In this document: positions 1 to 46,461 of the stretch, in pieces
How positions within the stretch are numbered: the first letter of the stretch is position 1
Layout of the letters: the number at the start of each line of letters is the position of its first letter
Assembly: GCA_965603825.1 (NCBI GenBank)
Contig: CBFDEM010000004.1
Coordinates: 806,001-870,000 of the forward strand
DNA: 64,000 nt
Origin: Blepharisma stoltei ATCC 30299
Lineage: Eukaryota > Protista > Ciliophora
Direction of reading: 5' to 3'
The notes under the pieces: generated by a model
Database searches by the model: none
Told to the model about the DNA's origin: nothing
The model's input: only the letters and a program-made list of their open reading frames with translations
Translations under genes and position numbers: made by a program

Positions 1-579
1 AATGGATTAAACATATTAATTGCGATAAGCACTGCTGTAATTTTTTATTGCAGTATAGCATGATGCTATCTCTTCTTAGCAAATATACAGAGATATTGAT
101 GGCAGAGCAAATACAATCTGTCCTTGAAGCAGTACAATGCTCAGCAAGATAATAAAATTTGATTGCCAAAAAGAGTTATAAATCAATGATGAGGTCCATA
201 ATAATGCACTTAATAGGAGTATCTCAAGAAATAGAAGCTTAAATAATAATAAATATCAAACAACTACAATACTGACTTTCATAGGTTTGGGCTTTATAAA
301 TGGTAGTGGATCATTACCTTATTTATTCATCCTTAAATAAATTATTAAACTACTAATCTTTACTCTACAAAAATCTGTGATATCATTATTTCTTATTTAA
401 AATTTCTCAACAACATATATCTCATTCATTTTTATTTTTAAATTATAATTATTTGACTTTAAAATTAATTAATCAACAACTCATCTTAATGCAATCTATT
501 AAACAATTTTTAGCAGGCTATCTTTTAATGATTCTTTGCAGCTTAATATTATTATTTAAATATAAATATTACAATTTAT

Positions 580-2511
580 ATGTCAATATCATATGATATA
601 TCAAGGATAATTCAAATACTGCAAATTCCTTCTAGACTTCGTAGCAATGAAGACATTGCTTATCTTATGACTCACACATCTAAAATAGACTTTTTTAAAA
701 AGATAACTGAAGAACAAAAATCATCTGAAGTTCATGAATACTGCTGCCAAGTAATGACATTTGAGGAGCATAATCCAGAAGATATAATAGTAAATTTTGG
801 TGAAAACGGATCTAATTTTTACATTGTTCTAAAAGGGTCAGCTTCAGTCAATATTCCTACAAAGAAAAAGATAGCAGTAAATCTCAGAGATTTAAAGAAA
901 TATAGACTTAAAACATTTTTATTAACGCTTTATGATGGAGAAGATGAAGTCCCTGAGATAAATCTTGACTTAAAAAAAAAGAAAAGAAGAGTCGGGAGAA
1001 TTTTCAATGCGGTTGATCTTAATTCACTTAATACTGCCATGCAAGAAAAGAAAAATGAAGACAATGGTAATCAGCAATTGAATGAATTTTCTAAAATAAA
1101 CGATCTATTTAAAGACAAAATTGATGAAGAAAAGGAAATAATTCTTGGTTTTTTGTCTAAGCAAAATCCAGGAACAAGATTTGTAGAAGTAGAAACTGAG
1201 AAGTTAAGTAAAGTTGCTATCATAAATGAAGGCGGATCCTTTGGAGAGCTATCTTTAATAAGTGAAAGACCTAGGGCTGCTACAATTATAGCAGAAGAAA
1301 AAATAATTTTAGGAGTCCTCTCAAAGGTAAACTTCAAAAAAATTCTTGGAAATCTAGCAGAAAAAAAGCTCAATGAAAAAATTAAATTTCTTCAAACCTT
1401 GCCAATGTTTTCGAATTGAAGCAAAATTGCTTTGTATAAATTAGGATTCTATTTTTCAAGAATTTTATATAAGAAGCATCAGTTTGTATATAAAGAAGGT
1501 GATCCAGCTAACACTGTATATTTTGTAAAGTCAGGAGAGTATAAGGTAAAAGTAAATTAGATTACAAAAATCCATAGTGAGCTAAAAGGGGTTGTTGATA
1601 CTTCATCTCTTGGTTCTCAAACAAGCCGGCTAAGTAGTCATAGCTCTGTTCTTAGACTAGGAAAAATGAGGAAAAAAAGTATCAAAAAGCAATTGCAGTT
1701 AGTGATCAAAGGAAAAAATGAAATGATAGGAATGGAAGAAGCATTGGAGAATTTTGAAAAAAGGATTCACTCTTGTCAATGCATATCTGATGAAGGCGAG
1801 GTGTTTTGCATAAGTAGAGATGTAATTATCATTTAGAATTTGAATATTGGGATAACTTATCCTGATACATGAGCCCAAATAAGAGATAAACATAATGCAA
1901 ATTATGCATTTTATAAACAAAGGGCCATCCAATTAACAAAAATTGAAGAGGTAAAAAAATCATTCGATTTTAGATCATTAAGTAAATTACCTGTTGAGCA
2001 CTTGGAAAAAGAAAAAGAAGAAACTGAAAAATTAAAAGAACCAATTCCAAACATTCAAGAAAAACTTATAAAAGATGGCCTTCCAAGCGTTTTAGATAAA
2101 CAACTTAAGCATTCTTCAACACTAACAACCCCAAAGCATAGAAGATTTAGATCATCTCCAGGCCCAAGCCCATGCCCATATCCAGGCACAGAAAGAGAAA
2201 AACCTATAGATTTGCCTATCTTCAAAGAAGATAGGCAAATAGTTTTCTATAATAGAAAAATTGACACTGGGACTCCAATATTTAATAATCTTAAAAGTCC
2301 GCAGGGTTTTAATACTGACTCTAAAAGAAGTACTGAAACAAATCCATACGAAAAATTTATTGATAAAAGATTTGCTCCTCGTAATTTTTTTAGCAATTGT
2401 AATTCACCAGCTTCTTCAAATAGAAAAGCTGATAGTGCGGAAGGAGGGCTTACTGCGAAGTTTAAAGATTATACAGCTAGAGTTTTGAGAAAATACTCAG
2501 ATGAAAGATAA
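580..2511 (+). CDS. Cyclic-nucleotide-binding domain protein, copy 1 (two CNBDs; join 580-1545,1561-1821,1837-2511; ~633 aa)
   Basis: FGE..FYIVLKG and SFGELSLI..PRAAT phosphate-binding cassette; second CNBD VYKEGDPANTVYFVKSGE. The frame stays open with TGA=Trp and removal of two 15-nt introns, and ends at TAA. Confidence 0.9.
1546..1560 (+). other. 15-nt spliceosomal intron GTAAAAGTAAATTAG
   Basis: GT..TAG with A at position 10; in-frame TAG; same position in all six paralogs. Confidence 0.9.
1822..1836 (+). other. 15-nt spliceosomal intron GTAATTATCATTTAG
   Basis: GT..TAG with A10; in-frame TAG; conserved position. Confidence 0.9.
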
Positions 2512-3422
2512 TATTAATTTCTTTAAATTTCTAATATTTGATTGGAAATCTGTATCATTATTATCTAATTACGCAAATTAATCTTTATATTCTTTAGTTT
2601 TGAAACGTAAATTTGCCAACCTTCTACTTTTATAGTCCATTTTTACTCAATTTCTAAATTTTCTTTAGCAATCACACTAAGTCTATTATATCTTCAATTG
2701 CTTCCAATGGGTTCACTGAAAATCTCTGCTAAGCAGGCCAATTATATCAATATTTTAATATCATTAAATTTCTCGACCAACTACGATTTATACCATATTT
2801 TTCGTTATTTTCCATTAGAGCTGGTTTAAAATCGTCTAATTTTCCTCTGTTTTAAATAAAATCATTTATCTTTTTAGGCTAAAACAATTATAATTTGCAA
2901 TCTATTTTCTTTAAAGTAAATTCTACCTATTAGCAATTCTGATGTCCATAGTCAAGCCGTTTGCCCTATTCTCGGATAAATATGAAGCCTTTTTACATCT
3001 CTAAATTCCATATCAATTATACCACTGATCTATAGTTAAAATGCTTTTTGATATCCCAGCAAAATTTAAACCTGCAAGATATTTAAAAAATGTATTTTTT
3101 AAGAAAATGCTTTAATGAGTAAATTATGTAATATTTTAAATTAAAAATGTATTCATTGTCCTCGTAACTAATTAATACAATTAAAATCCTTGCTCAAAAA
3201 AAGGAGACTCTGATTTCTCTACTCCCTTTTTAAGAATTTCGATAAGAGCCTAAATTATATACAGCGTCATTTTAATTTTTAACCTATAATTTTAGCTTTA
3301 AAATGAATTAATCAACAGCTCATCTTAATCCAATTTTTCAAACAATTCTTATCATAATCTAACTTTTAATAATTGCCTTATCTCAAGTGCTATTCTATAT
3401 ATAAATAAATACTAGTAATTGC

Positions 3423-5360
3423 ATGTCGGCATCATATGATATATCAATAATTACCCAAATATTGCAAATTCCTTCCTGGCATCGTAGTGAAGAAGACATT
3501 GCCTATCTTATGGCTCTTACATCGAAAATAGACTTTTTCAAAAAAATAACTGAAGAACAAAAATCACCTGAAATTCATAAAGCTTGCTGCCAAATAATGA
3601 CGTTTGAAGAGCATAACCCAGGAGATATAATAGTAAATTTTGGCGAAAACGGATATAATTTTTACATTGCTCTTAAAGGGTCGGCATCAGTAAATATTCC
3701 TACAAAGAAAAAGGTCACAATAAACATCAGCGATGCAGAGGCAGATAAGCTTAAAAAACTGTTTTTGACGATTAATCTCGAAGAAGACGATGTGTCTGAA
3801 ATAAAGGTCGATCCAAAAAAGAGAAAAAGAAGATGCGGCCAATTTTTCAATGCGGTCGATCTTGTTTCCCTAAATACTGCTATGAAAGATAAGAAAAATG
3901 AAGGCAATGATAATCAGCAGCCAACTGATTTTGGAAAAATAGTAGATTTATTTAAAGAGAAAATTGATGAAGAAAAATCAGTAATTCTGGATTTTTTGTC
4001 TAAACAAAGCCCAGAAGCAAGGGTTGTAGAATTAGAAACTGAGGAGTTAACTAAAGTCTCTATGATAAATGAAGGGGAATCCTTTGGGGAATTGTCTTTA
4101 ATAAGTAACAAGCCCAGGGCTGCTACAATTGTAGCAGAAGGAAAAATGATTTTGGGTGTTATATCAAAGCCAAATTTTCAGAAAATCCTTGGAAAACTTG
4201 CAGAAAAAAAGCTAAATCAAAAGATTGAATTTCTTCAAGCTCTACCAATGTTTTCGAATTGAAGCAAAATATCTTTATATAAATTAGGACCTTATTTTAC
4301 AACTATTTTATATAAGAAGCATCAATTTGTATATAAAGAAGGTGAGCCTGCCAACACTGTATATTTTGTAAAATCTGGAGAATTCAAGGTAAAAATAAAT
4401 TAGATTACAAAAATCCATAGTGAGCTGAAAGGAGTTGTTGATACCTCATCTCTTGACACTCAGACAAGTCGACTAAGCAGCAATGGAGCTGTTCTGAGAC
4501 TAGGAAATATGAGGAAAAAAAGCATCCAAAAGCAATTGCAATTAGTAATCAAAGGAAAAAATGAAATGATAGGAATGGAAGAAGTATTGGAAAATTTTGA
4601 TAAAAGGATTCACTCTTGTCAATGCAATTCTGACGAAGGCGAAGTATTTTGCATAAGCAGAGATGTAATTATCATTTAGAATTTGACTATTGGAATCACC
4701 TATCCTGATACATGAGCTCAAATAAGAGATAAGCATAATGCAAATAATGCATTTTTCAAGCATAGAGTTATCCAATTAACAAAAATTGAAGAGGCAAAAA
4801 AAACATTAGATTTAACATCATTAAGTAAATTACCTATTGAGCACTTGGAAAAAGAAGAAAATGAAAAATTATCAGAATCAATTCTTAATGAACAAGAAAA
4901 ATCTTCAAAGGAGACTAGATATAGCGCTCCAGATAAACAATTTAAACAATCTTCGCGACTAATGACTCCAAAGCATAGAAGATTTAGATCCTCTCCAGGG
5001 CCAGGCCCAGAAAAAGTAAAAACAAGAGATTCTCATGTCCTCGAAGAAGACAGATCAATAAATTTCTATAATAGAAAAATTGATACAGGGATTTTAAATC
5101 TTGATAGCCCTAAAGAACCTCAAAATTTTACTAGTGTTTTTAAAAGAAGTACTGAGATAAGCCCATATAAAACAATGATTAATAGAAGAATGGCTCCACC
5201 TAATTTCGTTAGAAATTATAAACCACGAGCTTCTTTAAATAGGAAAGCTGATAATGTAGCAGAAAAACTTGCTACAAAGTTTAAAGATAATTTAAACCAA
5301 AGCTTCAGAAAATATTCAGAAGATACCTACAAAAGGGAAGATTATAGTTATATGTTTTAA
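3423..5360 (+). CDS. CNBD protein, copy 2 (introns 4389-4403, 4665-4679)
   Basis: Paralog of copy 1 with the same motifs; open with TGA=Trp; ends at TAA. Confidence 0.9.
4389..4403 (+). other. 15-nt intron GTAAAAATAAATTAG
   Basis: Matches the intron consensus; conserved position. Confidence 0.9.
4665..4679 (+). other. 15-nt intron GTAATTATCATTTAG
   Basis: Matches the intron consensus; conserved position. Confidence 0.9.
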
Positions 5361-5900
5361 ATTCCTAATTCTTAATTGGAAATATGATTTCAATATTAAT
5401 CTTTAATCTATTTCCTTAATACTTAAACATCTTATTTTCTATCACCTCTTTTCCTGATTTATACTTTTATCATCAACTTTAAGCAATTTCTTGAGTCACT
5501 TGATAATGGGCTTGCTGAAAATCTGACTATGGAAGACAAATCTACGGTTATCGAACTATATTTTTAATGCCAGCCTTTATTTATTGAGCTCATTATAGGC
5601 TGAGCTGTATAAATCTTTTAAGGAGTTAATTTTAAATTTTTAATAATTGTTGAAAATAATGGCAATTTTGAAAAATATTTCTTTTGGAAGTATTTTAAAT
5701 ATAGTAGCATTGCCTACTAGTTCATTTATAGCTTTATAATAAAAATAGATTTATATTTTCTGCTAATTTCTATATGAATTCGACATAGATAAGAATAATA
5801 TATTTTGACAAGAAAATTAGAATATTTTAAGCTTAAAGCTTTATATAAGTTGAATCGATCATATAATTATCTTCTTTGCTCTATAAAATAGAAGATTGTG

Positions 5901-6030
5901 GTGCCACTACTCCCTATTTAATAAGTTAAAAGCAACCTAATTTTACTCATTTTCATTTTTATACTATAACTTGACTCTAAAATGAAATAATCAACAGCAC
6001 ATCTTAGCACAATTTATCAAAAAATTCTTA
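5901..6030 (+). promoter_or_regulatory. Conserved upstream blocks of the CNBD paralogs (example shown for copy 3)
   Basis: A CTCCCTATTTA-like block (~-190) and an AATCAACARCWCATCTTA-like block (~-110) recur upstream of the copies (the first is degenerate in copy 1), while the more distal spacer is not alignable by eye. Confidence 0.45.
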
Positions 6031-6099
6031 TCTCACTATCATTTTTTGATAATAACATAGCTTATAATGTAATTCTATATTAATAAATACTATTAATTC

Positions 6100-8049
6100 A
6101 TGTCAACGTCATATGATATATCAAGAATAACCCAAATACTTCAAATTCCTTCTAGGCTTCGTAATAACGAAGATATTGCCTATCTTATGTCTCTTACTTC
6201 GCAAATAGACTTTTTTAAAAAAATAACTGAAGAAGAAAAATCATCTGAAATTCATAAAGCTTGCTGTCAAGTAATGAAAGTTGAGGAGCGTAATTCTGGA
6301 GATGTTATAGTAAATTTTGGTGAAAAAGGCTATAATTTTTACATTGTCCTTAGTGGGTCAGCCTCAGTAAATATTCCTACAAAGAAAAAGGTCAAAATAA
6401 CACTGAGTGACGCAGAGAGATATAAACTTAAAAATATTTTTTTGACGCTTGATCTTGAGGAAGATGATGTATCTGAGATAAGTTTTGACTCAAAAAATAA
6501 GAAAAGAAGAGAGGCAAAAATTCTTAATAAGGTTGATCTTATTTCACTTACTACTGCCATTCAGGAAAAGAAAAATGAAGACAGTGATAATCAGCAGATA
6601 AATGAATTTTGCAAAATAAATGATTTATTCCAAGACAAACTTGATGAAGAAAAGAAAATAATTCTGGAATTTTTATCAAAACAAAACCCAGAAGCAAAAG
6701 TTGTAGAAATAGAAACTGAAGCGTTAGCCAAAGTTTCTATAATAAAAGAAGGCGAATCCTTTGGAGAATTGTCTTTAATAACTAATAAACCTAGAGCTGC
6801 GACAATTATAGTGGAAGAAAAAATAATTTTGGGAGTCCTCTCAAAGCCAAATTTTAAAAAAATTCTTGGAAACCTCGCAGAAAAAAAGCTTACTGAGAAA
6901 ATTGACTTTCTTCAAGCCTTGCCAATGTTTTCTAATTGAAGCAAAATTGCTTTGTATAAATTAGGACCTTATTTTTCGAGAGTTATATTTAAGAAGAATC
7001 AGTTCGTTTATAAAGAAGGTGATCCAGCGAACACAGTATATTTTGTAAAATCAGGAGAATTTAAGGTAAAAACAAATTAGATTACAAAAATCCATAGTGA
7101 GCTGAAAGGAGTTGTTGATACCTCATCGCTTGAGATTAAAAATAACGGAAGAAGCAACAATGGCGCTGTTCTTAGATTAGTAAATATGAGGAAAAAAAGC
7201 ATCCAAAAACAATTACAATTAGTGATCAAAGGAAAAAATGAAATGATAGGAATGGAAGAAGTATTGGAAAATTTTGATAAAAGGATCCACTCTTGTCAAT
7301 GCATATCTGATGAAAGCGAGGTATTTTGCATAAGCAGAGATGTAATTATCATTTAGAATTTGACAATTGGAATAACTTATCCTGAAACATGAGCCCAAAT
7401 AAGAGATAAACACAATGTAAATTATGCATTTTTCAAGCATAGAGTTATCCAATTAACAAAAATTGAGGAGGCAAAAAAATCTTTAGATTTAAAATCATGA
7501 AATAAACTGCCTATTAATTATTTGGGAAAAAAAGAAACTGAAAAATTAGAAGAGCCATATCCAAATATGCAGAAAAAATCTGTAAAGGAAGCTAGGTTTA
7601 GCTCTCCTGATAAAGAGTATAAGCAGTCATCATGGTTTACAACTCCAGAGCATAAAAGAATTAAATCTTCTCCAAGCCCATGCCAATATACCAACCCAAA
7701 AAGAGTAAAAACTGAAGAGTCTCCTGTCTTCAAAGAAGACAGGTCATTAATTTTCTATAATAGAAAAATTGATACTAGGACTTCAAATACTGACAGTCCT
7801 AAAAGACCTCAGAGTTTTACAACTGTTTTAAAAAAAAGCACTGAGACAAGCCCTTATAATAAGATCGCTCATAGAAGAGTAGCTCCGCCTAATTTCCTGA
7901 GAAATCATAAACCAAGAGCTAATTCTATAAGAAAAGTTTATAATGCTGCAGAAAATCTTGCTGAGAAATTAAAAGAGAAAGCAAATCTAAGCTTGGGAGA
8001 CTATTCAGCAGAAATGGAAAAGAGAGCATATAAGAGTTTTTTTCTTTAA
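6100..8049 (+). CDS. CNBD protein, copy 3 (introns 7066-7080, 7342-7356)
   Basis: Paralog with three in-frame TGA=Trp; ends at TAA. Confidence 0.9.
7066..7080 (+). other. 15-nt intron GTAAAAACAAATTAG
   Basis: Matches the intron consensus; conserved position. Confidence 0.9.
7342..7356 (+). other. 15-nt intron GTAATTATCATTTAG
   Basis: Matches the intron consensus; conserved position. Confidence 0.9.
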
Positions 8050-8618
8050 ATTTTAATACTTTGATGAAAAATATGTTTTCAATATTATCTATTGCTGAAT
8101 TTTTCAGCAAGCTTTTATTTATACTCCATGAGTGATTTTTGATCGTCTTGGGGTGAATATACAGCAAAATCTATGAAAAACCAATAAATAAAAATTGGAT
8201 TTCTTGGTCTATTCTTATTTGGGATCTAATTTATAAGTTCTAACTACCTGAGTTTGCTATGGCTTGGGTTCATAAATTGTTTTGTGAGCTATTTACATAA
8301 AATGATCATTCCGAAGATAGGCAAAATTGTTAGGATAAGAATATTAAATTACATCTTATAAAACCTTATTTATTGTGCAATTAACTAGATTATATATTAT
8401 TAATAATTCATGTTAAGCAAAAAAGGAGAATGTTCCCTATTTAAGAATCCATATCATTAATTTTATTATTTTCATTTTTAATCTATATTTTGACTTCAAA
8501 ATTAATTAATCGACAACTCAATTTAATGCAGTTTATCAAAAATTTCTTATCAGACTATAACTCTTGCTAGTTTTTATAGCTTAAAATGCCATTCTATATA
8601 AATAAAATTAAAATTTAT

Positions 8619-10568
8619 ATGTCAGTATCATATGATATATCAAGAATTACTCAAATTCTGCAAATTCCTTCTAGACTTCGTAGTCAAGAGGATATTGCCT
8701 ATCTTATGGCTTTAACATCAAAAGTAGACTTTTTTAGAAAAATAACTGAAGAACAAAAATCATCTGAAATTCATAAAGCTTGCTGCCAAATAATGACGTT
8801 TGAAGAGCGTAAAATTGGAGATACTATAGTAAATTTTGGTGATAACGGATTTAATTTTTACATTGTTCTCAAAGGGTCTGCTTCAGTTAATATTCCAACA
8901 AAGAAAGAGGTCAAAATAAATCTCAAAGGTGTAGAGACTGATAAACTTAAAAAGATTGTTTCGACACTTAGTGATGAAGAAGATGATATAGGTGAAATAA
9001 AATTCGACCCAAAGAAAAGAAAGCGTCGTGCTGGAAAAATTTTCAATGCGGTTGATCTTATTTCACTTAGTACTGCTATGCAAGAAAAGGAAAATGAAGA
9101 AAGTGATAATCAGCAGTTAAATGAGTTTTGCAAAATAAATGATTTATTTAAAGACAGACTTGATGAAGAAAAAGCAATAATTCTGGATTTTTTATCAAAG
9201 CAAAATCCAGAAGCAAAAGTTGTAAAAATAGAAACTGAGGAATTAACCAAAGTTGCTATCATAAATGAAGGAGAATCCTTTGGAGAATTGTCTTTGATAA
9301 GTAATAAGCCTAGGGCTGCTACACTTATTGCAGAAGAAAAAATAATTTTGGGAGTCATATCAAAGCCAAATTTTAAAAAAATTCTTGGAAAATATGAAAT
9401 AAAACGGCTAAATGAAAAAATTGACTTTCTTCAAGCTTTACCAATGTTTTCTAATTGAAGTAAAACTGCTTTATATAAATTAGGACTTTATTTTTCAAGA
9501 GTTTTATACAAGAAGCATCAGTTCGTATATAAAGAAGGCGATCTAGCTAACACTGTTTATTTTGTAAAATCTGGAGAATTTAAGGTAAATCTAAATTAGA
9601 TTACAAAAATCCATAGTGAATTGAAAGGTGTTGTTGATGTCTCATCTTTAGATACTCAATCAAGCAGGCTAACCAGTAATGGCACTGTTCTTAGATTAGA
9701 GCAAATGAGGAAAAAAGGTATCCAAAAACAATTACAATTAGTAATCAAAGGAAAAAATGAAATGATAGGAATGGAAGAGGCTATGGAAAATTTTGATAAA
9801 AGAATTCACTCTTGCCAATGCTGATCTGATGAAGGCGAATTATTATTCATAAGTAGAGATGTAATTAAAATTTAGAATTTGAAAGTTGGAATAACTTATC
9901 CTGATACATGAGCCCAATTAAGAGACATTCACAATGCAAATAGCACATATCTTAACCAAAGAGTTAAACAATTAATAAAAATTGAGGAGGCTAAAAAATC
10001 GTTGGACTTAAAATCATGAAGTAAATTGCCAACTACCCTTCTGAAAAGAGAAGAGACTGAAAAACTTAAAGAGATATTTCCAAATATAAAGGAAAAGCCT
10101 GCAAAGGAAGCTAGATATAGCATTCCCGATAAAGATCTAAATCACTCTCCACGATTGTCCCCAGAGCATAAAAGGTTTAGATCTTCTCCAGTTCCAAACC
10201 AATCTCCATATTCAGAAAAAGTAAAAACTAGAGAGTCGTCTGTCTTCAAAGAAGACAAATCAAAAATCTTCTATAATAGAAGAGTTGATACTGGGATATC
10301 AAATCTTGATAGCCCCAGAAGTCCTAGTTGTTTTACTACTGACTCTAAAAAGAGCACTGAGACAACCCCATATAAAAATTCTTATCATAGAAAAGGCGCT
10401 CCACCTAGTTTCTTTATAAATTTCAAAAAGCGAGCTTCTTCTTCTAATAGAAATGGTGAAAATGTGGCCAAAAAAATTGCTGAGAAATTTAAGGATCATG
10501 CAGATAAAAGCTTGAAAGATTATTCAGCAGAAATCTATAAGAGGGCATGCAAGAGCTATTTTCTTTAA
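8619..10568 (+). CDS. CNBD protein, copy 4 (introns 9585-9599, 9861-9875)
   Basis: Paralog. Start placed at the ATG homologous to the other copies (MSVSYDIS). Four in-frame TGA. Confidence 0.9.
9585..9599 (+). other. 15-nt intron GTAAATCTAAATTAG
   Basis: Matches the intron consensus; conserved position. Confidence 0.9.
9861..9875 (+). other. 15-nt intron GTAATTAAAATTTAG
   Basis: Matches the intron consensus; conserved position. Confidence 0.9.
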
Positions 10569-11206
10569 ATTTCTAATATTTAATAAGAATATAGTTTCAA
10601 TATTATAATTCTTTTGTAAATTTCATTTGAGCTCATATATAACTATTCTGCATCCTATTATAATTCTTCCACCTAATTATATGAAACTCTATTTCAATTA
10701 TCTAAATTGAATATTAGTGTAATGGCCAATGATATTTAAATATGATTTTCTAATAAAAAATTTAGCACATTTCGATAGAATACGATTTTAGATATCTACC
10801 TAAGAAAATTAGGCAATATTTAATTAATACGTATTTGCTGTGTCTTGTATATTAATAATTTTTGCTCCACAAATAAGCAAAATGTGACGCCACCACTCCC
10901 TATTAAGAATTCTCAACAATATTAATTTTATTCGCTCCATTTTAAATCTATATTTTGGCTTAATTACTCAACAACTTATCTGAATGCAATTTATCAAGCA
11001 ATTATTTATTTAATTGGCATCTAGATCTTGTACTGATAGAAATCATTCATCTTTACTTGCTAAAACATTAAACAGCCACCTGTTCTAATAAGATTTAGGC
11101 CTTTTATTCTGTAAATAACTCAGAGTCAAATTTATTATAAGACTATAAATTTTGATAAAAGCCGTAGCTTAAAATATAATTTTATATAAATTAATACTAA
11201 AATTGT

Positions 11207-13114
11207 ATGGAAACAGCACATGATATATCGAGAATAACCCAAATATTGCAAATTTCTCCGAAGCTTCGTAGTGAAGAGGATATTGCATATCTTATGGCTC
11301 TTACGTCGAAAATAGACTTTTTTAGGAAAATAACTGAAGAACAAAAATCATCAGAAATCCATAAAGCTTGCTGCCAAGTAATGACATTTGAGAAGCATAA
11401 CCCTGGACATTTAATTGTAAATTTTGGTGAAAAAGGCTCAAATTTTTATATTGTTCTTAAAGGATCGGCATCAGTAAACATTCCTAGAAAGAAAAAGGTT
11501 ACAATAAGTCTTAGAGATCTAGAGACAGATAAACTCAAAAAAATTATTTCGATGCTTCATAAAGAGGAAGACGATATATCTGAAATAAAGTTCGACCCAC
11601 AAAAAAGAAGACGAAGGGGTGGAAGAATTTACAATGCGGTTGATCTTATTTCACTTAATAGTGCCATGCAAGAAAAGGAAAATGAAGAAAGTGATAATCA
11701 GCAGTTAAATGAACTTTACAAAATAAATGATCTATTTCAAGACAAACTTGATGAAGAGAAAGCAATAATTCTGGATTTTTTGTCTAAACAAAATCCAGAA
11801 GCAAGAGTTGTAGAAATAGAAACTGAGGATTTAACCAAAGCTTCTATCATTAATGAAGGGGGTTCATTTGGAGAATCTGCTTTAATAAGTAATAAGCCTA
11901 GAGCTGCAACACTTATAGCAGAAGAAAAAATTATTTTGGGAGTTATATCAAAGCCAAGTTTTAAAAAAATTGTTGAAAACCTTGCAGAAAAAAAGCTCAA
12001 TGAGGTACTTGAATTTCTTCAGGCCTCAGGAATGTTTTCTAATTGAAGCAAAATTGCTTTATATAAATTAGGACCTTATTTTTCAAGAATTTTATATAAG
12101 AAAAATCAGTTTGTATACAAAGAAGGTGAGCCAGCCAACACTGTATATTTTGTAAAATCTGGAGAATTTAAGGTAAAAATAATTTAGATTACAAAAATCC
12201 ATAGTGAGCTGAAAGGAGTTGTTGACACCTCATCGCTTGAGACTAAAAATAATCGAATAAGCAGCTCTGTTCTTAGACTAGGACAAATGAGAAAAATTGG
12301 TATCTTAAAACAATTGCAATTAGTAATTAAAGGAAAAAATGAAATAATAGGAATGGAAGAAGTGATGGAAAATTCTGACAAAAGAATCCATTCTTGTCAA
12401 TGCTGATCTGATGAAGGTGAATTACTATGCATAAGCAGAGATGTAATTAACATTTAGAAATTGTCTAATGGAATAACCTCTCCTGATACATGAGCCCAAT
12501 TAAGAGATAAGCACAGTGCAAATAATGCATTTTTCAAAGAAAGAGTTATCCAATTGATAAAAATTGAAGAGGCAAAAAAGTCACTAGATTTAACATCGTT
12601 TAGTAAATTGCCTATCAAGTGTATAGAAAAAGAGAAAGAGGAAATTGAAAAATTAAAAGAATCTCCAAATATAATGGACAAGACTATGAAGGAAACTAAA
12701 TCTAGCTCTCCTGATAAAGAAGTTAAATGCTCCTCGTGGTTTATATCCCCAAAGCATAGAAAATTAAGATCTTTGCCAAGCCCAAGCCCGAGCCCATATC
12801 CAAGCCTAGATAAAGTAAAAATTAGAGATTCACCTGTCTTCAAAGAAGACAGATCAATTTTGTTCTATAATAGAATAATTGGCACTGGGATATCAAATTT
12901 TGATAGTCCTAAAGCCCCTAAGGGTTTTACTATTGGCTTTAAAGAAAGAATTAAGAAAAAAAAACAAATTGTTCATAGGAGAGTGGCTCCTCCTAATTTC
13001 TTGAGAAATTATAAACAGAGGGCTTCTAGTTGGAAAGCTGATAATATAACTGAAGAGCTTGCTGCAAAATTTAAAGATTATGTGAATCGAAGCTTAAGGA
13101 AATATTCAGAATAA
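11207..13114 (+). CDS. CNBD protein, copy 5 (introns 12173-12187, 12443-12457)
   Basis: Paralog with the cassette variant FGESALI; ends at TAA. Confidence 0.9.
12173..12187 (+). other. 15-nt intron GTAAAAATAATTTAG
   Basis: Matches the intron consensus; conserved position. Confidence 0.9.
12443..12457 (+). other. 15-nt intron GTAATTAACATTTAG
   Basis: Matches the intron consensus; conserved position. Confidence 0.9.
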
Positions 13115-13864
13115 TCTACAAGATAGATAATCATTAATTATTTAATTTCTAATATTTTATGGGTAAATATGATTTGCTATTATACTCATTGCTATTTATG
13201 GAAATAAATATATAATCTACTTGCTTACTTGTAATAATAACTATAGGCTATATAAAATGATTTAAGCCCCACAGAAAAATATTAATAGGCAACAAAGATA
13301 ATAAATCAGACTCTTGATTTTATATCATTCTTTACATATTTCTGCTTTTATCTGCAGAAAATAACAATTTTCTATAGTCTCAAGAGTTTTGTTAACCGTT
13401 TTGCAGACTTTCTGCACCTTATATTAAAAAAAATTACCAGTCTTAGAGCAAGATAAACAAAAAAACTGTTTATTGATAATATTTTAAAACTAAGGATCCA
13501 TAAGCATCCTATAATCTTTTTGAAAATCTGAATAGATAATTTTATCTAATTCATATAATAATTTTTATTGCAAAGTAAAAAATATCTTGAAATAATAATA
13601 TCAGATTGAAATCTTATTTTTTACGTTCTTAAATAAATTATATAATTAATAATTCTTGCTGAAAGTTGAGGTCACTCCTCCCTATTTACAATTTTACAAA
13701 ACATTTATTTAACTCATTTTTATTTTAAAACTATAATTGACTTTAGAATAATTTAATCGACAACGCGTTTAAATGCATTTTACGAAATAATTCTTATAAT
13801 ACTATAATTTTTTGCAATTACTGTATCTGAAAATGTCATTCTTATAAATAAATACTAAAATTGC

Positions 13865-15826
13865 ATGTCAGAGTCATATGATATATCAAGAATAACTCAA
13901 ATATTGCAAATTCCTTCAAGACTTCGTAGTGAAGAAGACATTGCTTATCTGATGTCTCTTACATCGAAAATAGACTTTTTTAAGAAAATAACTGAAGAGC
14001 AAAGATCATCTGAAATTCATAAAGCATGCTGCCAAGTAATGACATATGAGGAGCGTAATCCAGGAGATATAATTGTAAAATTCGGAGAAAACGGCTATAA
14101 TTTTTATATCATCCTTCAAGGGTCAGCATCAGTAAATATTCCTAGAAAGAAAAAGGTCACAATAGATCTCAGCGATGTAGAGGCAGAAAAGTTTAGAAAG
14201 ATTTTATCAACGCTTAATAAAGAGGAAGATGACATATCTGAAATAAGGCTTGATTCAAAATTAAGGAAGAGAAGAGGAGGGGCAATTTTCAATGCGGTTG
14301 ATCTTATATCACTTAATACTGCTATGCAAGTAAAGGAAAATGAAGACAGTGATAATCAGCAGTTAAATGGAATTTTGAAAATAAATGATTTATTTAAAGA
14401 CAAACTTGATGAAGAAAAAGCAATAATTCTGGATTTTTTGTCTAAACAAAATCCAGAGGCAAGAGTTGTAAAATTAGAAACTGAGGAGTTAAACAAAGTT
14501 GCTATCATAAAGGAAGGAGAATCCTTTGGAGAATTGTCTTTAATAAGTGATAAACCTAGAGCTGCTACACTTATTGCAGAAAAAAAAATAATTTTGGGAG
14601 TCATATCAAAGCCAAATTTTCAAAAAATTCTTGGAAAATACGAAGCAAAAAGGCTTAATGAAAAAATCGAATTTCTTCAATCTTTGCCAATATTTTCGAA
14701 CTGAAGTAAACTTGCTTTATATAAATTAGGACTCTATTTTTCAAGAATTTTATACAAGAAACATCAATTCGTATATAAAGAAGGAGAACTAGCCAACAAT
14801 GTGTATTTTGTTAAATCCGGAGAATTTAAGGTAAATCTAAATTAGATTACAAAAATCCACAGTGAGCTGAAAGGAGTTGTTGATACTTCATCAATTGAAG
14901 CTCAAGGAAGCCGAATAAGTAGTAATGGCTCTGTTCTTAGACTTGGGAAAATGAGGAAAATTGGTATCCAAAAACAATTACAATTAGTAATCAAAGGAAA
15001 AAATGAAATGATAGGAATGGAAGAAGCTATGGAAAATTTTGAAAAAAGGATCCATTCTTGCCAATGCTGATCTGATGAAGGTGAATTATTATGCATAAAC
15101 AGAGATGTAATTAATAATTAGAATTTGACCGTTGGAATAACTTATCCTGAAACATGAACCCAAATAAGAGATAAACACAATGCAAATAATGCATTTTTCA
15201 AGCAAAGAGTTTCACAATTAATAAAAATTGAGCGAGCAAAAAGATCATTGGATTTAAGCGCATTTAGTAAAATACCTGTTAAATTCTTGGAAAAACTGGA
15301 AAAAGAAAAAGAAGAAAATGAAAAATTAAAAGAGCTAGCTCCAAGTGTACAGGAAAAGCCTGTAAAGGAAACTAGATCTAGTCTTCCAGATAAAGAAATT
15401 AATCATTCTCCAAGAATAATGCTCCCTGAACTTAAAAGGTTCAGAACTTCTCCAAGTCCAAGCCCCTCTCCAAGCCCAGAAAGAGTAAAAACTGAAGAGT
15501 CACCTGTCTTCAAAGAAGACAGGTCAATAATTTTCTATAATAGAATTATTGATACTGGGCTATCAAATCCTGATAGTCCACAAACTCCTCAAAGCTTTAC
15601 CCCTGGAATTAAAAATAGAAATAAATCAAATCCCCATAAAAAGATAGTTCATAGAAGAGGCGCTCCACCTAATTTCTTGAGAAATTATAAACAAGCTATT
15701 TCTAATAGAAAAGCTGATAATGCAATAATAGAAGAAATTATTATGAAATATAAAGATGATCTAGATCAAAGCTTGAGAAAATGCTCAGCAGATACCAAGA
15801 GAGAAGATAATAGTTATTTTCTTTAA
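13865..15826 (+). CDS. CNBD protein, copy 6 (introns 14831-14845, 15107-15121)
   Basis: Paralog with three in-frame TGA; ends at TAA. Confidence 0.9.
14831..14845 (+). other. 15-nt intron GTAAATCTAAATTAG
   Basis: Matches the intron consensus; conserved position. Confidence 0.9.
15107..15121 (+). other. 15-nt intron GTAATTAATAATTAG
   Basis: Matches the intron consensus; conserved position. Confidence 0.9.
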
Positions 15827-40102: not shown

Positions 40103-40583
40103 TCATTTTTAATTTTATGATTTTGCAAGGTGAGCTATGATTAAATTCACTTTTTCAAGTAGTTTTGTATTTTACTTTAGAGATATAAACAATTAAAATC
40201 TTTTAAGGCATTTGAATTTTTGCTATTTTAAATCAAGCCTAAAATAATCTCTAATTGTAAGGTTTTTAAGCCCAAAAGTATTTATTATGCAATTAATAAT
40301 TATTAAATTGCAATATCTCATGAGCTTTAATATCTTTTCAATCCCTTGATTTCTCTTAGCTTCTCATGAATGTTTTATTTATTTATACGTAATTTAGAAT
40401 AGTCTTGATTTTTCAATATAAAATCATTAGCTTAATAAAAATCTCTAAGCTCTATATCTTCTTATAATAATCATACTATCATAACTGCTAAATCTTCATA
40501 TTGAGCATTAAAGTGATTTACATGTTAAAATAAGAAATATCCAACTCACCTTGCTTATTTTAGATTTAATTTATCTATATAAA

Positions 40584-42008
40584 ATGGCCTATACACTTTG
40601 GGTTGGTCTATTACTGATTTCTTTTTCTTTTGCAGCAATTACAGAAGAAAATGATGTATGGGTCCTTAATGAGTCAAATTTCCAAGAAGCTTTAGACATC
40701 CAGCCAGACCTGCTAGTAGAATTTTATGCTCCATGGTGTGGACACTGCAAAAAGCTTGCCCCAGAATACGCAAAAGCAGCTAAAATCCTCAAATCCAAAA
40801 CTCCATCAGTCAGAATTGCTAAAGTTGATGCTACACGAAACTCAAATCTTGCATCAGAGCATGGAATAGAAGGCTACCCTACCCTAAAATATTTCGTAAA
40901 TAAAAAAGCTACTGAATACTCTGGCGGAAGAACCGAAGACACTATAGTCTCTTGGGTTTGGAAAAAAGCAGGGCCAGCTACTATAATTATTGACAATTTA
41001 TCTGACCTTAAAAAACAATTAGAAAATGCTAAAGTTTCAGTCGTGCTTTTTGCTCAAAAAGATGCTGCTGAAGCAAGCATTTTCGAAAAAGTCGCTAAAA
41101 ACTTCGAAGACCTTGAATTTTATTTGTCCACAGATTCTGCAGCTCTTCAAGAATATGGAGTTACTGAACCAAAAGTAATTTTGTTTAAACGATTTGACGA
41201 TAAAGAAGACAGATATGATGGAGAATTTACCCAACCAGAATTGATACAATGGGTTGAGGGAAATAAAAAGCCATTGCTTATGAAATTTGATGACGCAGCA
41301 ATTGAATATATTTTCACAAATCAGCACCCTTGTGTATTTTTATTCAGGTTTGAAAATGATACTGCTCAGTATCACCAAATGGTATCAAAAGTAGGGAAAG
41401 AATTTAAAAAAGACATTGCCTTTTCATATGCAGATCTTTCACTAAGTGAAATGAAAAGACTTGGAGAATATTTAGGATTTGGCGTCAAAGATATGCCAAC
41501 TGTTGCTATTGTGGACCACAAAGACGGGCTTAACAAATACAGAATATCTGAACCGCTAAGTGAGGTTTCAATAAAAACTTTCATTCAAGACTGGAAAGAC
41601 CAAAAACTCACCCCATTTTTAAAATCAGATCCGATCCCAGATAACGAGTTTGACGGAAGCGTAAGAATTTTGGTCGGGAACAACTTTGAAAGCGTCGTTT
41701 ATGACCCAACCAAAGACGTCCTCGTAGAGTTTTATGCGCCTTGGTGTGGCCATTGCCAAGCCCTTGCTCCTGATTATGAAAAACTTGCTGCTGAGCTTAA
41801 AAGTAACCCTAATATTATTATATCAAAAGTAGACGGCACTACAAATGAAGTCAAAGGCGTTAACATCTCATCATTCCCTACACTGAAATGGTTCCCTTCT
41901 AATAACAAAAAAGGTATAGATTTCGATGGAGAAAGAACTTATGATGGGCTGCTCAAGTTCGTGACTGAAAAAGCTACAGCCAAAACAGCTGAAAAAACAG
42001 ATCTTTAA
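40584..42008 (+). CDS. PDI: Protein disulfide-isomerase
   Basis: Signal peptide, two APWCGHC sites, a-b-b'-a' length, C-terminal KTDL. Confidence 0.96.
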   Translation: MAYTLWVGLLLISFSFAAITEENDVWVLNESNFQEALDIQPDLLVEFYAPWCGHCKKLAPEYAKAAKILKSKTPSVRIAKVDATRNSNLASEHGIEGYPTLKYFVNKKATEYSGGRTEDTIVSWVWKKAGPATIIIDNLSDLKKQLENAKVSVVLFAQKDAAEASIFEKVAKNFEDLEFYLSTDSAALQEYGVTEPKVILFKRFDDKEDRYDGEFTQPELIQWVEGNKKPLLMKFDDAAIEYIFTNQHPCVFLFRFENDTAQYHQMVSKVGKEFKKDIAFSYADLSLSEMKRLGEYLGFGVKDMPTVAIVDHKDGLNKYRISEPLSEVSIKTFIQDWKDQKLTPFLKSDPIPDNEFDGSVRILVGNNFESVVYDPTKDVLVEFYAPWCGHCQALAPDYEKLAAELKSNPNIIISKVDGTTNEVKGVNISSFPTLKWFPSNNKKGIDFDGERTYDGLLKFVTEKATAKTAEKTDL

Positions 42009-42229
42009 TTATTTAGAATTATTTGTTTAAATTAATGATAAGCCCCTGCTGATATTTATTAGCTTTTTCTCAATTAAATCGGGGGATTTATTATCATCTG
42101 CTTATTTATGACTCAAAAATCTATTCCTTTCCCCTAAATTCCTACATCTCCAATAAAATTTCTCCTTTAGATATTCATATTTATCATAAATCAGCCAATC
42201 AGTTTTCACGTTAAGGATAAAAATTTAAT

Positions 42230-42565
42230 TTAATCTTCATCACTTTCTTCAGATTCCTCTTTTTTCTCCTCTTCCTCTTCATCCTCAGCATGTCCTGACA
42301 AATTAGCTTTTTCTTGATTATATCTTTCTTTATCTTGGCTTGCTTTTTCTGCGTAAGGAGCCTTTTGGTCATTTGTTAGCTTGCCCCATTCTTGCCCGAT
42401 AACTTTAGATTGCTCAGTGATTTTGAGATCTGGCTGCTCCTCTTTGAGTGTAACCCTTCTTTCTTGAGAATAAAACATAAAAGCTGATTTTGGCTTCTTC
42501 GGGCCATCTTTCTTTACCCTCTTCGATTTTTTAGCGACTCTTGCTTTTCCCGCTTTCTTACCCAT
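42230..42565 (-). CDS. HMG-box protein (NHP6/HMGB-like)
   Basis: PKKPKSAFMFY...W..L...K.PY...A..DKERY; basic N-terminus and acidic tail. Confidence 0.95.
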   Translation of the reverse strand: MGKKAGKARVAKKSKRVKKDGPKKPKSAFMFYSQERRVTLKEEQPDLKITEQSKVIGQEWGKLTNDQKAPYAEKASQDKERYNQEKANLSGHAEDEEEEEKKEESEESDED

Positions 42566-42849: not shown

Positions 42850-44787
42850 ATGCTTCAAAACTTAGAAGTATCATGCTACTGTGGGACCAAACTAAGCGTT
42901 CAAAAAGGGCTGAAACATATGATGGGCTGCAGTGCATGAAAAAAAAAATCGTCTCTATATCGGGCTGCTGAAAAACAAGTAAAAGAAACTGGCAGCATCT
43001 CACTTTTAAGGCTGGAATGCGAAGCTTTAATGTATGCAGAATTTGACTTGTCTGCAAGCCCTTTGTCTCCAAAAAAAGTTGAAAATTCTTTCCCTGAGCC
43101 AATACTGCCCCCAGAGCTTCCGAGAATAAAGAACCCATTAGAAATAAAACCCAATAATTCAGATTTGATACAAATTCCGACAAGAAAAAAACAAGAAATC
43201 CCTGCTATCATCCCGAATTTCCCAGCTCCAATAGAGCCAGTCAAAAAAAGGAATCAACCTACATCAGAAGAAGAAAGTTTAAAGCTGATTATGGCTTTAC
43301 AAAGAGAACAGGAAGAAGAAAAGCATCAGCAGACTAAGGACGAACTTATGTGTGAAATCTGCAGAAAAGTGTGGCCTGATATGACAAAAATGTTCTTTCC
43401 TGAATGCTGCCATATGATGTGTAAAGACCACATCATACAAACAATTGTAGCTAGATACCCTACAAATACTAAAATTTCATGCCCTAAAGAAGGCTGTGAA
43501 TATGTGTTGTGTAACGAAGAATTAGAAGACTTAATAGGGAAAAAAGAATTAGAAGAGCTAGGAAACAATTCTTTAAAAGAATTCATAGGCGAAGACGCTA
43601 TCATAGTAGAATGCATCTGTGGGGTTTCTTCGATAGTAGACCCAGGAATTGTAGATTATACCTATAAAGATGAAAATGGAGCTGGCATATCTAGAGAAGC
43701 TGCAGAACACATGGCAAAATACCGATTCCGCTGTGCAGCTTGCAACCGCGTTATTTGTGCAAAATGCAAAGTCGAGCCTTATCATCTTGGAAAAACCTGT
43801 GAAGAGCACCAAAATTTCAAAAAATCCAAACATTGCCGATACTGTCAAAAAGTTGTGCATTCTTCTAGGCCAGTCTGCAAAGACCCAGTATGCAGAGCCC
43901 GCTACAGAACGGCTTGTCGCAAAGTCCATTCCTGTGGACATCAGTGCTTTGGGGTAAAACATGAAGCTGAATGCCTTCCTTGTATTGCTGATGGCTGTGG
44001 TAGCATTGCTAATGAGAACGATTATTGTACAATTTGTTATACAGAAGGACTCGGAGCTGCTCCTTGTGTCCAGCTAGAATGTGGCCACGTTCTTCATTAT
44101 CATTGTGTCCTAACTTCATTAGAAAAACGATGGGTAGGACCAAGAATTACTTTTAATTTCGCGAAATGCCCATCTTGTAAAACCTGGGCAAATGCCCCAA
44201 ATAATGAAAAAATCTCTATCAAAATGGCAGAAATTATTGATTTATATAATGATATTGTAGGAAAAGCTGTAAAAAGGCTGAAATTTGAAGGTATGGAAAA
44301 AGATGCAAGGCTGACGAACCCAGAAGACCATTATTATAAGCAGCCAGAAAAATACGCGATGGACAGGTTTGCGTATTATGAGTGTTTTAAATGCAAGAAG
44401 CCGTATTTTGGAGGTAAAAAAGAATGTGAGCAGAATATGGATAGAGGAAATTATGAGGCTTCTGAGCTTGTATGTCCTGGATGTGCTGCTGTAGGATTGG
44501 AAGGACAGAACTGTAGCATGCATGGACTGGAATTTATTGAATTTAAATGCAAATTCTGCTGTAATATTGCAGCGTGGTTCTGCTGGGGGAATACTCATTT
44601 TTGTGATTCGTGCCATACTCAGCAAAATGAAGGGAATTATCTGACCAAAAAGAAAAGAGAAGAACTCCCGAAATGCCCAGGACCAAGCCTATGTCCGCTG
44701 AAAATTAGACACCCTGCTAATGGAGAAGAGTTTGCATTGGGGTGCTCCATTTGTAGGAATCTCAGAGCAAATGAGCTTGGATTTTAG
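42850..44787 (+). CDS. E3 ubiquitin ligase: RING1-IBR fused to a MYCBP2/Highwire-type C-terminal RING-Cys-relay module (~645 aa)
   Basis: The C-terminus follows the PHR-family pattern (CGH.C.GVK.E..CLPC, C.IC.TE.L.AAP..QL.C.H, RW.GPRITF, AYY.C.KC.K.YFGG, KC.FCC, FC.G.THFC, H...GEEFALGC). The ATG at 42850 is in frame through one TGA. Confidence 0.88.
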
Positions 44788-44973
44788 ATTAATGCTACCC
44801 TAATTTTAAATCAAATAATTCTTATTATAAAAATTAATAAGCCATTAAACAGCTCTGATTTTTGTACAAATAATAATAATATTAAACTTAGCGAAAACAG
44901 AAATTTTTACAATTGTATAATCTATTAACATTAACTGCACAATATGTGGCTATTAATATAAATATTTGAAAGG

Positions 44974-46461
44974 ATGCTGTCCAAAGTTCTAAAAACGTTC
45001 TCAAGTCGCACTCCTTTCAGACAAATGAGCTCAGGGCCTTCAACAGAGCCTAATTTCTTGGAAATGGTCAACATGTATTTCGACAAAGCAGCAAAACATA
45101 CAGATATAAAGCCAGAAGTCTTGGAGCTGATTAAAACATGTGATACTGTATTACGTGTAACCCTTCCTCTCAAGAAAGATGATGGGTCTATTAAATACTA
45201 TAAAGCTTATAGAGCACAGCATTCTCATCATAGGCTGCCTTGCAAAGGAGGTACAAGATATGCATTGGATGTTGATCTTAATGAGGTTGAAGCTCTTTCT
45301 TTCCTTATGACACTCAAATGTGCATGTGTGAACTTACCATTTGGAGGAGGGAAAGGAGGAATTACTGTGGACCCTAAGACTCTTTCACTTGGTGAAAGAG
45401 AAAGATTGACAAGGAGATATGCATTGGAATTGAGCAAAAAAGGGTTTTTAAGTCCTGCTGCTGATGTGCCAGGACCTGATCTTGGGACTGGAGAGCTTGA
45501 AATGGCATGGATGATGGATACTTATAAATCACTAAATCCAACAAACTTAAATGCTGTTGCTTGTACCACTGGAAAGCCATTGGAAATGGGAGGTATCCCA
45601 GGCAGAGCAGAATCCACAGGGCTTGGGCTTTATTATGCATTAAGAGAATTTTTGAGAGACAAAAAATATACTGATAAGGTTGAACTTCCTACTGGAATCA
45701 ATGGCAAAAAAGTAATTGTCCAAGGATTCGGTAATGTCGGCTATTGGGCTTGCCACTTCCTCCAAAAAGATGGTGCCAAAATCCTTGGTGTTATCGAGCC
45801 AAGCGGCAGTGTATTTAATGAAAACGGCATTGACGTCGACGACCTGAAAGCTTTCATGATCCAGCACAAAACTCTCAAAGGCTACCCCAAAGCAGAGCTC
45901 GTCGAAAACGGCCAAGAAGTTTTCACCAGAAAAACCGATATCATAATCCCAGCAGCCGTCGAACGATCAGTACACGGCAGCAACGCTCCAAACTTCAATT
46001 GTAAAATCCTCGCCGAAGGCGCTAACGGCCCTACCACTCCTCTCGGTGAAGAAGCCCTCGAGAAAAAAGGCGTCCTGGTGCTCCCTGACCTTCTCATGAA
46101 CGCAGGCGGTGTTACAGTTTCCTTCTTCGAGTACGTCAAAAACCTTGGACACATCAAGCCTGGCCTGCTTACCAAAAGATGGCAAGGAAAACGTAACAGA
46201 AGCATAATAGAAGCCATCGCCACCTTAAAAGGCATCTCCCATGAAGAACTTGAAGCCAAAAGTGCTGACTGGAAAAAACTCGCAGAAGGTGCCAGTGAGC
46301 TTGACCTGGTCTACTCTGGCCTTGAACAAATCATGAGTGAAGCCGTCCAAGAAACAAAAGAAACCAGCGAACGCCTTGGAGTGAACCTCAGAATTGCAGC
46401 CTATGTAAATTCCTTGCAAAGAATTGACGATGCTACACTCAAAGGGACTATAGGACTCTAA
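44974..46461 (+). CDS. GDH: Glutamate dehydrogenase, mitochondrial
   Basis: PCKGGTR, PFGGGKGG, TGKP..GG, QGFGNVG, EGANGPTT, NAGGVTVSFFE; presequence-like N-terminus. Confidence 0.97.
   Translation: MLSKVLKTFSSRTPFRQMSSGPSTEPNFLEMVNMYFDKAAKHTDIKPEVLELIKTCDTVLRVTLPLKKDDGSIKYYKAYRAQHSHHRLPCKGGTRYALDVDLNEVEALSFLMTLKCACVNLPFGGGKGGITVDPKTLSLGERERLTRRYALELSKKGFLSPAADVPGPDLGTGELEMAWMMDTYKSLNPTNLNAVACTTGKPLEMGGIPGRAESTGLGLYYALREFLRDKKYTDKVELPTGINGKKVIVQGFGNVGYWACHFLQKDGAKILGVIEPSGSVFNENGIDVDDLKAFMIQHKTLKGYPKAELVENGQEVFTRKTDIIIPAAVERSVHGSNAPNFNCKILAEGANGPTTPLGEEALEKKGVLVLPDLLMNAGGVTVSFFEYVKNLGHIKPGLLTKRWQGKRNRSIIEAIATLKGISHEELEAKSADWKKLAEGASELDLVYSGLEQIMSEAVQETKETSERLGVNLRIAAYVNSLQRIDDATLKGTIGL

Follow-up and report, generated by a model that had tools for sequence, protein, structure and literature searches.

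A 64,000 nucleotide stretch of the Blepharisma stoltei ATCC 30299 genome (positions 806,001 to 870,000 of contig CBFDEM010000004.1, hereafter the window) contains an open-reading frame which a preliminary description, made from the sequence alone, read as an RBR-type RING1-IBR pair joined to a MYCBP2-type RING-Cys-relay (RCR) module. MYCBP2 is an animal ligase that modifies Thr or Ser, rather than Lys, with ubiquitin. This raises the question of whether a ciliate encodes both parts in one protein and, if so, which of its two RINGs would receive the E2 and what the other would be for.

The first point to settle was the gene itself. Translated with table 4, the frame is identical to deposited protein P0012 and forms a single, intron-less exon ending in a TAG stop (Table 1). 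P0012 stood for the read-through protein in analyses that required it, with pieces of the window serving elsewhere. UGA is read as Trp in B. stoltei, which has a genome of 41 Mbp (PMC9942806), and the lone in-frame TGA, codon 30, lies in an alignment column that is also Trp in a B. stoltei paralog and in Stentor; a 1920-base transcript contig of a close relative (L007) retains both the frame and the TGA. In three RNA-like runs a gap-free, mismatch-free contig of 1939–1990 bases spans the whole ORF, beginning at 42857/42861 and ending at 44795–44850, with flanks free of coverage. The RNA status of these runs is a program's guess, with which the gene-by-gene coverage and the poly-T end of a neighbouring gene are in keeping. 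One open frame together with one gap-free transcript contig rules out two genes, an intron or a frameshift, so the single protein of ~645 aa that had been proposed is upheld, and an artefact in which two genes or a mis-assembly mimic a fusion is refuted, the more so as the same domain order recurs in ~160 proteins and in the paralog. Compared with the close relative, the N-terminal finger region has a pN/pS of 0.27, and RING1, IBR, linker and RCR have values of 0.04–0.08 (0.06 in RING1 alone).

Table 1 Features of the RING1-IBR-RCR gene, with positions counted from the first letter of the window.
Feature	Position	Strand	Basis
Coding sequence of the predicted RING1-IBR-RCR ubiquitin ligase, 645 aa	42850..44787	+	Table-4 translation identical to P0012; one transcript contig
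C2HC-type finger, C-x-C-x11-H-x3-C, aa 9–27	42874..42930	+	Ligand conservation
In-frame TGA, Trp30	42937..42939	+	Trp in paralog and Stentor; TGA kept in L007
Proline-rich linker, aa 71–137, not conserved	43060..43260	+	pLDDT <50; mostly missing in paralog
MIU-like helix, aa 140–155	43267..43314	+	Helix in model; motif pattern
RBR-type RING1, C168–C216, C-x4-C second loop, without basic linchpin	43351..43497	+	Profile, model, conservation
RING1-IBR helical linker, aa 221–250	43510..43599	+	Helices 222–229 and 231–246 in models; HOIP alignment unbroken
IBR/BRcat, C255–C317, 37-residue insert between second and third Cys	43612..43800	+	Ligand conservation, Pfam
Cys/His-rich zinc linker, C329–C383, not Rcat	43834..43998	+	11 conserved ligands
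RING-H2 of RCR, C393–C443 (MYCBP2 C4390–C4440), most likely E2 dock	44026..44178	+	Alignment, Ile/Pro conservation
RCR helix-turn-helix linker	44188..44361	+	MYCBP2 alignment; long helix in model
Tandem-cysteine (TC) catalytic domain of RCR	44383..44754	+	E 2e-74, Z 19.1
C526, upstream mediator-loop relay Cys (C4520)	44425..44427	+	100% of 80 non-redundant homologs
E539, acidic triad residue	44464..44466	+	Glu/Asp in 91% of 80 non-redundant homologs; role from PMC9527308
C578, downstream catalytic Cys (C4572), and W579	44581..44586	+	Cys 100%, Trp 91% of 79 homologs
H589, predicted general base (H4583), and Q592 three residues on	44614..44625	+	His 98% of 80 non-redundant homologs, Gln 85%

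The surrounding genes encode a protein disulfide isomerase (40512–42005, +) and a glutamate dehydrogenase (44971–46458, +), the latter with a second, diverged copy visible in the contigs, and a small transcribed gene, HMG-box-like by eye, lies at ~42203–42565 (−); none of the three has a tie to ubiquitin. Elsewhere in the window, the ORF map shows a two-gene unit repeated in tandem about six times (547–15823), encoding ~330 aa and ~225 aa proteins (table 4) with a period of ~2.6 kb.

The C-terminal 255 aa form a complete MYCBP2 RCR module, as had been claimed. Residues 358–608 match the MYCBP2 structures 5O6C and 6T7F (E-value 2e-74), and a model of residues 160–645, built on an alignment of 65 sequences (pLDDT 91, pTM 0.73), aligns with 6T7F/5O6C at Z 19.1 over 241–244 residues, with an rmsd of 4.3–5.3 and 45–46% identity; in an earlier model from 12 sequences the catalytic domain was poor (pLDDT 66). 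The two cysteines picked out by eye in the preliminary description are indeed the relay pair, as C526 and C578 fall on positions 143 and 195 of the 263-aa 5O6C chain, and the structural alignment equates C526 with C4520, C578 with C4572, C393 with C4390 and H589 with H4583 in the numbering of the entry. E539 we take to be the counterpart of E4534. A RING, a tandem-cysteine domain, both relay cysteines, the His and the acidic residue, as expected of the RCR class, are thus all present in sequence and in fold, the three-Phe pocket being the exception, and both cysteines are invariant across the family (Table 1). Residue numbers follow the PDB chain, with C4520 as in PMC12664034.

The relay of MYCBP2, its Cys-His-Glu triad and its three-Phe pocket have been described in detail (PMC9527308, PMC6769291; the mechanism also in PMC9120709), and C4520S has been used as an inactive mutant (PMC12664034). 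The acceptor pocket is where the B. stoltei protein departs from MYCBP2: F584 is kept, as in 97% of homologs, W579 replaces F4573, and Q592 probably stands in the place of F4586, in a register that is uncertain, HMMER placing a 3-residue gap there. These three positions are what we assume to be the pocket Phe of MYCBP2. Ester-linked, non-lysine ubiquitination, suggested in the preliminary description, is plausible because the RCR is complete with both relay cysteines; selectivity for Thr, however, is not assured, and because the pocket reads Trp/Phe/Gln rather than Phe/Phe/Phe the predicted acceptor hydroxyl (Thr, Ser or another) is not fixed. The replacement of two of the three Phe could equally be taken to mean that an intact relay serves lysine, or that the protein is a plain RING ligase which forms no ester through its cysteines. 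We hold this to be very unlikely, as it is difficult to see, were there no relay, why both non-zinc cysteines and the His should have been preserved for more than a billion years, and MYCBP2 itself has no lysine activity (PMC9527308). One homolog from an ENA assembly, P0057, which groups with a large, probably gut-ciliate clade, retains both relay cysteines; its catalytic His is replaced by Tyr and its pocket Phe by Ile, and it may be a pseudo-enzyme or have an altered specificity.

Upstream of the RCR, both proposed RBR-type domains were recovered at their expected positions. The zinc ligands of RING1 are 90–100% conserved, the sixth being His (H194) and not Cys, and all eight IBR ligands are 98–100% conserved, along with R292, P310, Y311 and G314. 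The Pfam IBR profile scores weakly on the window protein alone (E 0.0019) and exceeds its curated cut-off of 24.3 bits in homologs (29.1, 32.0, 31.6, 28.7, 26.4 and 24.9 bits). A profile of the RING1-helix-IBR arm finds HOIP, ARIH2 and HOIL-1 among its top matches in the PDB, with RING1, helix and IBR in a single run, and in the B. stoltei genome it returns two RING1-IBR-RCR genes first, followed by ~30 weaker matches, for the most part to RING1-helix-IBR stretches within ordinary RBR genes. Modelled residues 163–328 align with HOIL-1, RNF216 and ARIH2 at Z 9–10, the rmsd of 6–10 being expected because the domains are hinged, and the modelled RING1 aligns with the RING of 1WIM at Z 10.2. Pfam matches to Trm112p, DUF3516 and B-box were all below cut-off and were set aside, the B-box match coinciding with the IBR's second zinc site.

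No Rcat follows the IBR, in agreement with the preliminary description: the RBR structural matches end there, each homolog has one Pfam IBR-type stretch, and the next segment, which runs into the RCR, has a different ligand pattern. This pattern and the structural matches rule out the zinc linker as a hidden Rcat. In the ESM Atlas, modelled clusters of animal MYCBP2-like proteins can be aligned with the window protein from residue 352, and the linker probably corresponds to the pre-RING zinc region of MYCBP2, a match which we presume to extend over the whole of C329–C383. With RBR matches ending at the IBR and a linker that is likely MYCBP2-derived, the graft point would lie between IBR and linker. 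The 11 conserved Cys/His of the linker are one short of three zinc sites, and E372, a Glu/Asp in 98% of sequences, may be the twelfth ligand; by eye, the second half of the linker resembles an NF-X1-type finger.

The architecture is not a curiosity of one ciliate. Three word searches, covering members of up to ~1130 aa, recovered ~160 proteins (80 non-redundant) with RING1-IBR-RCR, and 163 of 165 scanned proteins run from IBR into RCR, the other two being short fragments. Members without RING1 are mostly N-terminally truncated predictions, with a few in which RING1 is degenerate and the IBR intact. The family includes ciliates (Stentor, Euplotes, Stylonychia, Tetrahymena malaccensis, Protocruzia, Nyctotherus and Pseudomicrothorax), Rhizaria (Paulinella, Nonionella and Bolivina) and, in Amoebozoa, the dictyostelid Polysphondylium violaceum, in which the gene exceeds its coding length and has a dictyostelid-type gene as its neighbour. 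In all 79 members that could be measured, the second and third IBR cysteines are separated by 37–54 residues, compared with 12–15 in 22 ordinary RBRs of the B. stoltei genome, and because this insert is common to all of them the sequences point to a fusion that arose once, early. In a quick, unrooted tree without an outgroup, 66 rows form one clade (SH-aLRT 99) in which all the named ones are ciliates and which splits roughly by ciliate class, whilst rhizarian, amoebozoan and unassigned rows fall outside; on this evidence the family was likely inherited vertically from a time before the ciliates radiated. One further sequence, P0069, reads Trp at many zinc-ligand positions, probably because a sequence with TGA=Cys (Euplotes-type) was translated under the wrong table, and was left out of the conservation counts.

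In the B. stoltei assembly (41.46 Mb, 64 contigs) we found two RCR genes, both of the compact RING1-IBR type. The paralog (L002:523–2268; G000:C4, ~663273–665018) encodes 581 aa with the same architecture and all catalytic residues, is ~55% identical, has a shorter linker and lacks the MIU-like helix. Separately, an ESM Atlas cluster of 73 proteins, mostly from diatoms, combines an FBA domain (PF04300, F-box associated) with a part that aligns with the RCR (aa 385–645), and as modelled is a second compact protist RCR architecture.

RCR modules in protists are thus already latent in databases, where members carry automatic names such as 'RCR-type E3 ubiquitin transferase' (UniRef A0A8J4PPP8), 'E3 ubiquitin-protein ligase MYCBP2' (JGI) and 'RING-type domain-containing protein'. 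Among these database names none mentions the RING1-IBR fusion, and we found no experiment on a member. We likewise found no paper in the open literature that describes a RING1-IBR fused to an RCR, and the hybrid is apparently undescribed there, subscription journals being largely outside that coverage.

The N-terminal region is more variable. The C2HC-like finger noted in the preliminary description is borne out by C9, C11, H23 and C27, which are 85–97% conserved in the ~55 of 80 homologs having the region; it has no Pfam family match, and ESM Atlas gave weak leads only (e.g. the RNF138 C2HC finger, TM 0.40). A helical bundle follows to ~aa 69, and in the 12-sequence model pLDDT is under 50 for aa 65–138, the proline-rich linker (aa 71–137) being probably disordered. 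What had been called a UIM-like helix is not supported as a UIM, as it lacks the central Ala of the consensus and has no Pfam match. It is closer to the inverted form, the MIU, as we take that consensus to be, although Ile occupies the key central Ala position. Of 63 homologs, 8 show the MIU-like pattern, the canonical Ala being present in three of these, and the helix is not conserved. It is a possible ubiquitin binder. Other members carry PX, RanBP2/NZF or UBA-like domains before RING1-IBR-RCR (P0130, P0134, P0007 and P0064), and the N-terminal slot is filled, according to lineage, by a C2HC finger, RanBP2/NZF fingers, a weak UBA-like domain, PX or MIU-like helices.

Which of the two RINGs docks the E2 can be addressed from the RING positions that contact E2. 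In the RCR RING, Ile precedes the second Cys in 76 of 79 sequences and Pro follows the seventh ligand in 64 of 79. Of 65 RING1 sequences in the family, 35 have I/V/L/M and 31 have Pro at the corresponding positions, and 16 have a Tyr/Phe in the central helix, compared with 22/22, 19/22 and 14/22 in ordinary RBR RING1s of the B. stoltei genome, a pattern-selected control from one genome set against a family that spans three eukaryotic lineages. The window protein keeps two of these three positions in RING1 (I170 and P212, but not T198). Outside the zinc ligands, mean conservation is 0.29 in RING1, 0.47 in the IBR, 0.56 in the RCR RING and 0.59 in the TC domain, and the conserved residues of the arm (D274, S281, R292, P310, Y311 and G314) cluster in the IBR insert and the second zinc site. 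As the E2 face is conserved in the RCR RING and relaxed in RING1, E2~Ub most likely docks on the former. The preliminary description of an enzyme with two potential E2-binding RINGs, in which the RCR replaces Rcat, therefore stands only in part: RING1-IBR without Rcat is present and I170 and P212 are kept, but only about one family member in two retains the E2 face of RING1, and in some the whole RING1 is degenerate.

With the gene, its transcript, domains, conserved catalytic residues, family and purifying selection established, the enzymatic activity is a prediction, and we lean, with modest confidence, towards a compact RCR-type E3 with MYCBP2-like catalysis and an RBR-derived regulatory arm which senses ubiquitin or positions the substrate and is not the main E2 dock. 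By homology with MYCBP2, E2~Ub would dock on the RCR's own RING-H2, ubiquitin would pass to C526 and be relayed to C578, and H589 would deprotonate the substrate hydroxyl to give an ester bond. The arm and its insert might bind ubiquitin or a ubiquitinated substrate, position or switch on the RCR, and so stand in for the large substrate-recruiting body of animal MYCBP2. We suggest this role because the RING1-IBR of RBR ligases binds ubiquitin and because the N-terminal slot varies among ubiquitin- and membrane-binding types; the RING1-IBR helix of RBR ligases binds an activating ubiquitin, and allosteric ubiquitin binding at RING1-IBR occurs in HOIP, Parkin, HOIL-1 and RNF216.

The arm could instead deliver ubiquitin itself, RING1 docking E2~Ub in the open conformation typical of RBRs and handing ubiquitin to the RCR cysteines as a stand-in for Rcat, or both RINGs docking different E2s for one relay. 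RING1, helix and IBR are continuous and RBR-like in sequence and fold, RING1 is under strong purifying selection and has no linchpin, and, with I170, P212 and the C-x4-C loop kept and a pN/pS of 0.06, RING1 of the window protein could still bind an E2. Yet conservation is higher in the RCR RING, for which this route would leave no need, RING1 has a relaxed E2 face and is degenerate in some members, as above, and the mediator loop of MYCBP2 takes ubiquitin from an E2 on the adjacent RING (PMC9527308, PMC9120709), and we consider this route rather unlikely. It is likewise improbable, in our judgement, that RING1-IBR has no part in sensing ubiquitin and serves as a scaffold, structural or autoinhibitory, or uses the IBR insert to bind a substrate or a partner other than ubiquitin: the conserved arm residues in the insert and second zinc site, and a pTM of 0.73 for aa 160–645, suggestive of domains that pack together, would suit such a role, but N-terminal domains of ubiquitin-binder type have been gained independently, which argues for ubiquitin-rich targets. 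A broader proposal seems to us doubtful as a whole, namely an RBR-RCR hybrid whose RING1-IBR would sense ubiquitin chains or receive a second E2, and would supply or gate a relay that esterifies, with its Trp/Phe/Gln pocket, a hydroxyl other than that of protein Thr, in a family as old as the Amoebozoa-SAR split and possibly near the ancestral MYCBP2 module.

To our knowledge MYCBP2 is the sole characterised RCR ligase; at 510 kDa, it has been studied mostly as a 30-kDa fragment. A whole natural RCR protein of ~70 kDa, in ciliates including Tetrahymena and Stentor, in Rhizaria and in one dictyostelid, would allow the regulation and targeting of a relay ligase to be studied at full length. It bears on the age and prevalence of ester-linked ubiquitination among protists, and its differing pocket on what sets the choice of acceptor.

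In architecture the protein is neither a MYCBP2 ortholog nor, lacking Rcat, an RBR. It shares with MYCBP2 the RING-H2, helical linker and tandem-cysteine domain, both relay cysteines, the catalytic His and Glu and all zinc ligands at 44–46% identity, and probably the pre-RING zinc region. It differs in its size (645 aa vs. ~4600), in its RING1-IBR, in its pocket, and in having none of the RCC1-like, PHR and FBD1 body, the gene being bounded by its transcript and neighbouring genes and both genomic RCR genes being compact. RNF213 and ZNFX1 are also transthiolating ligases with two E3-associated parts, and the RING of RNF213 is dispensable for its Cys-based activity (bioRxiv 10.1101/2021.05.10.443411); this likeness is an analogy only, as we found no relation between the catalytic-domain sequences and the B. 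stoltei protein has no AAA or helicase body. With the RBR ligases (HOIP, HOIL-1, ARIH1/2, RNF216, RNF144 and Parkin) it has RING1, helical linker and IBR in common, alike in order and in fold (Z 7–10), but it has the 37–54-residue IBR insert of its family, a relaxed RING1 E2 face and, in place of RING2/Rcat, catalysis assigned to an unrelated domain. The hybrid therefore bears on what an RBR RING1-IBR does without Rcat, and connects two transthiolating E3 classes that have been treated as separate.
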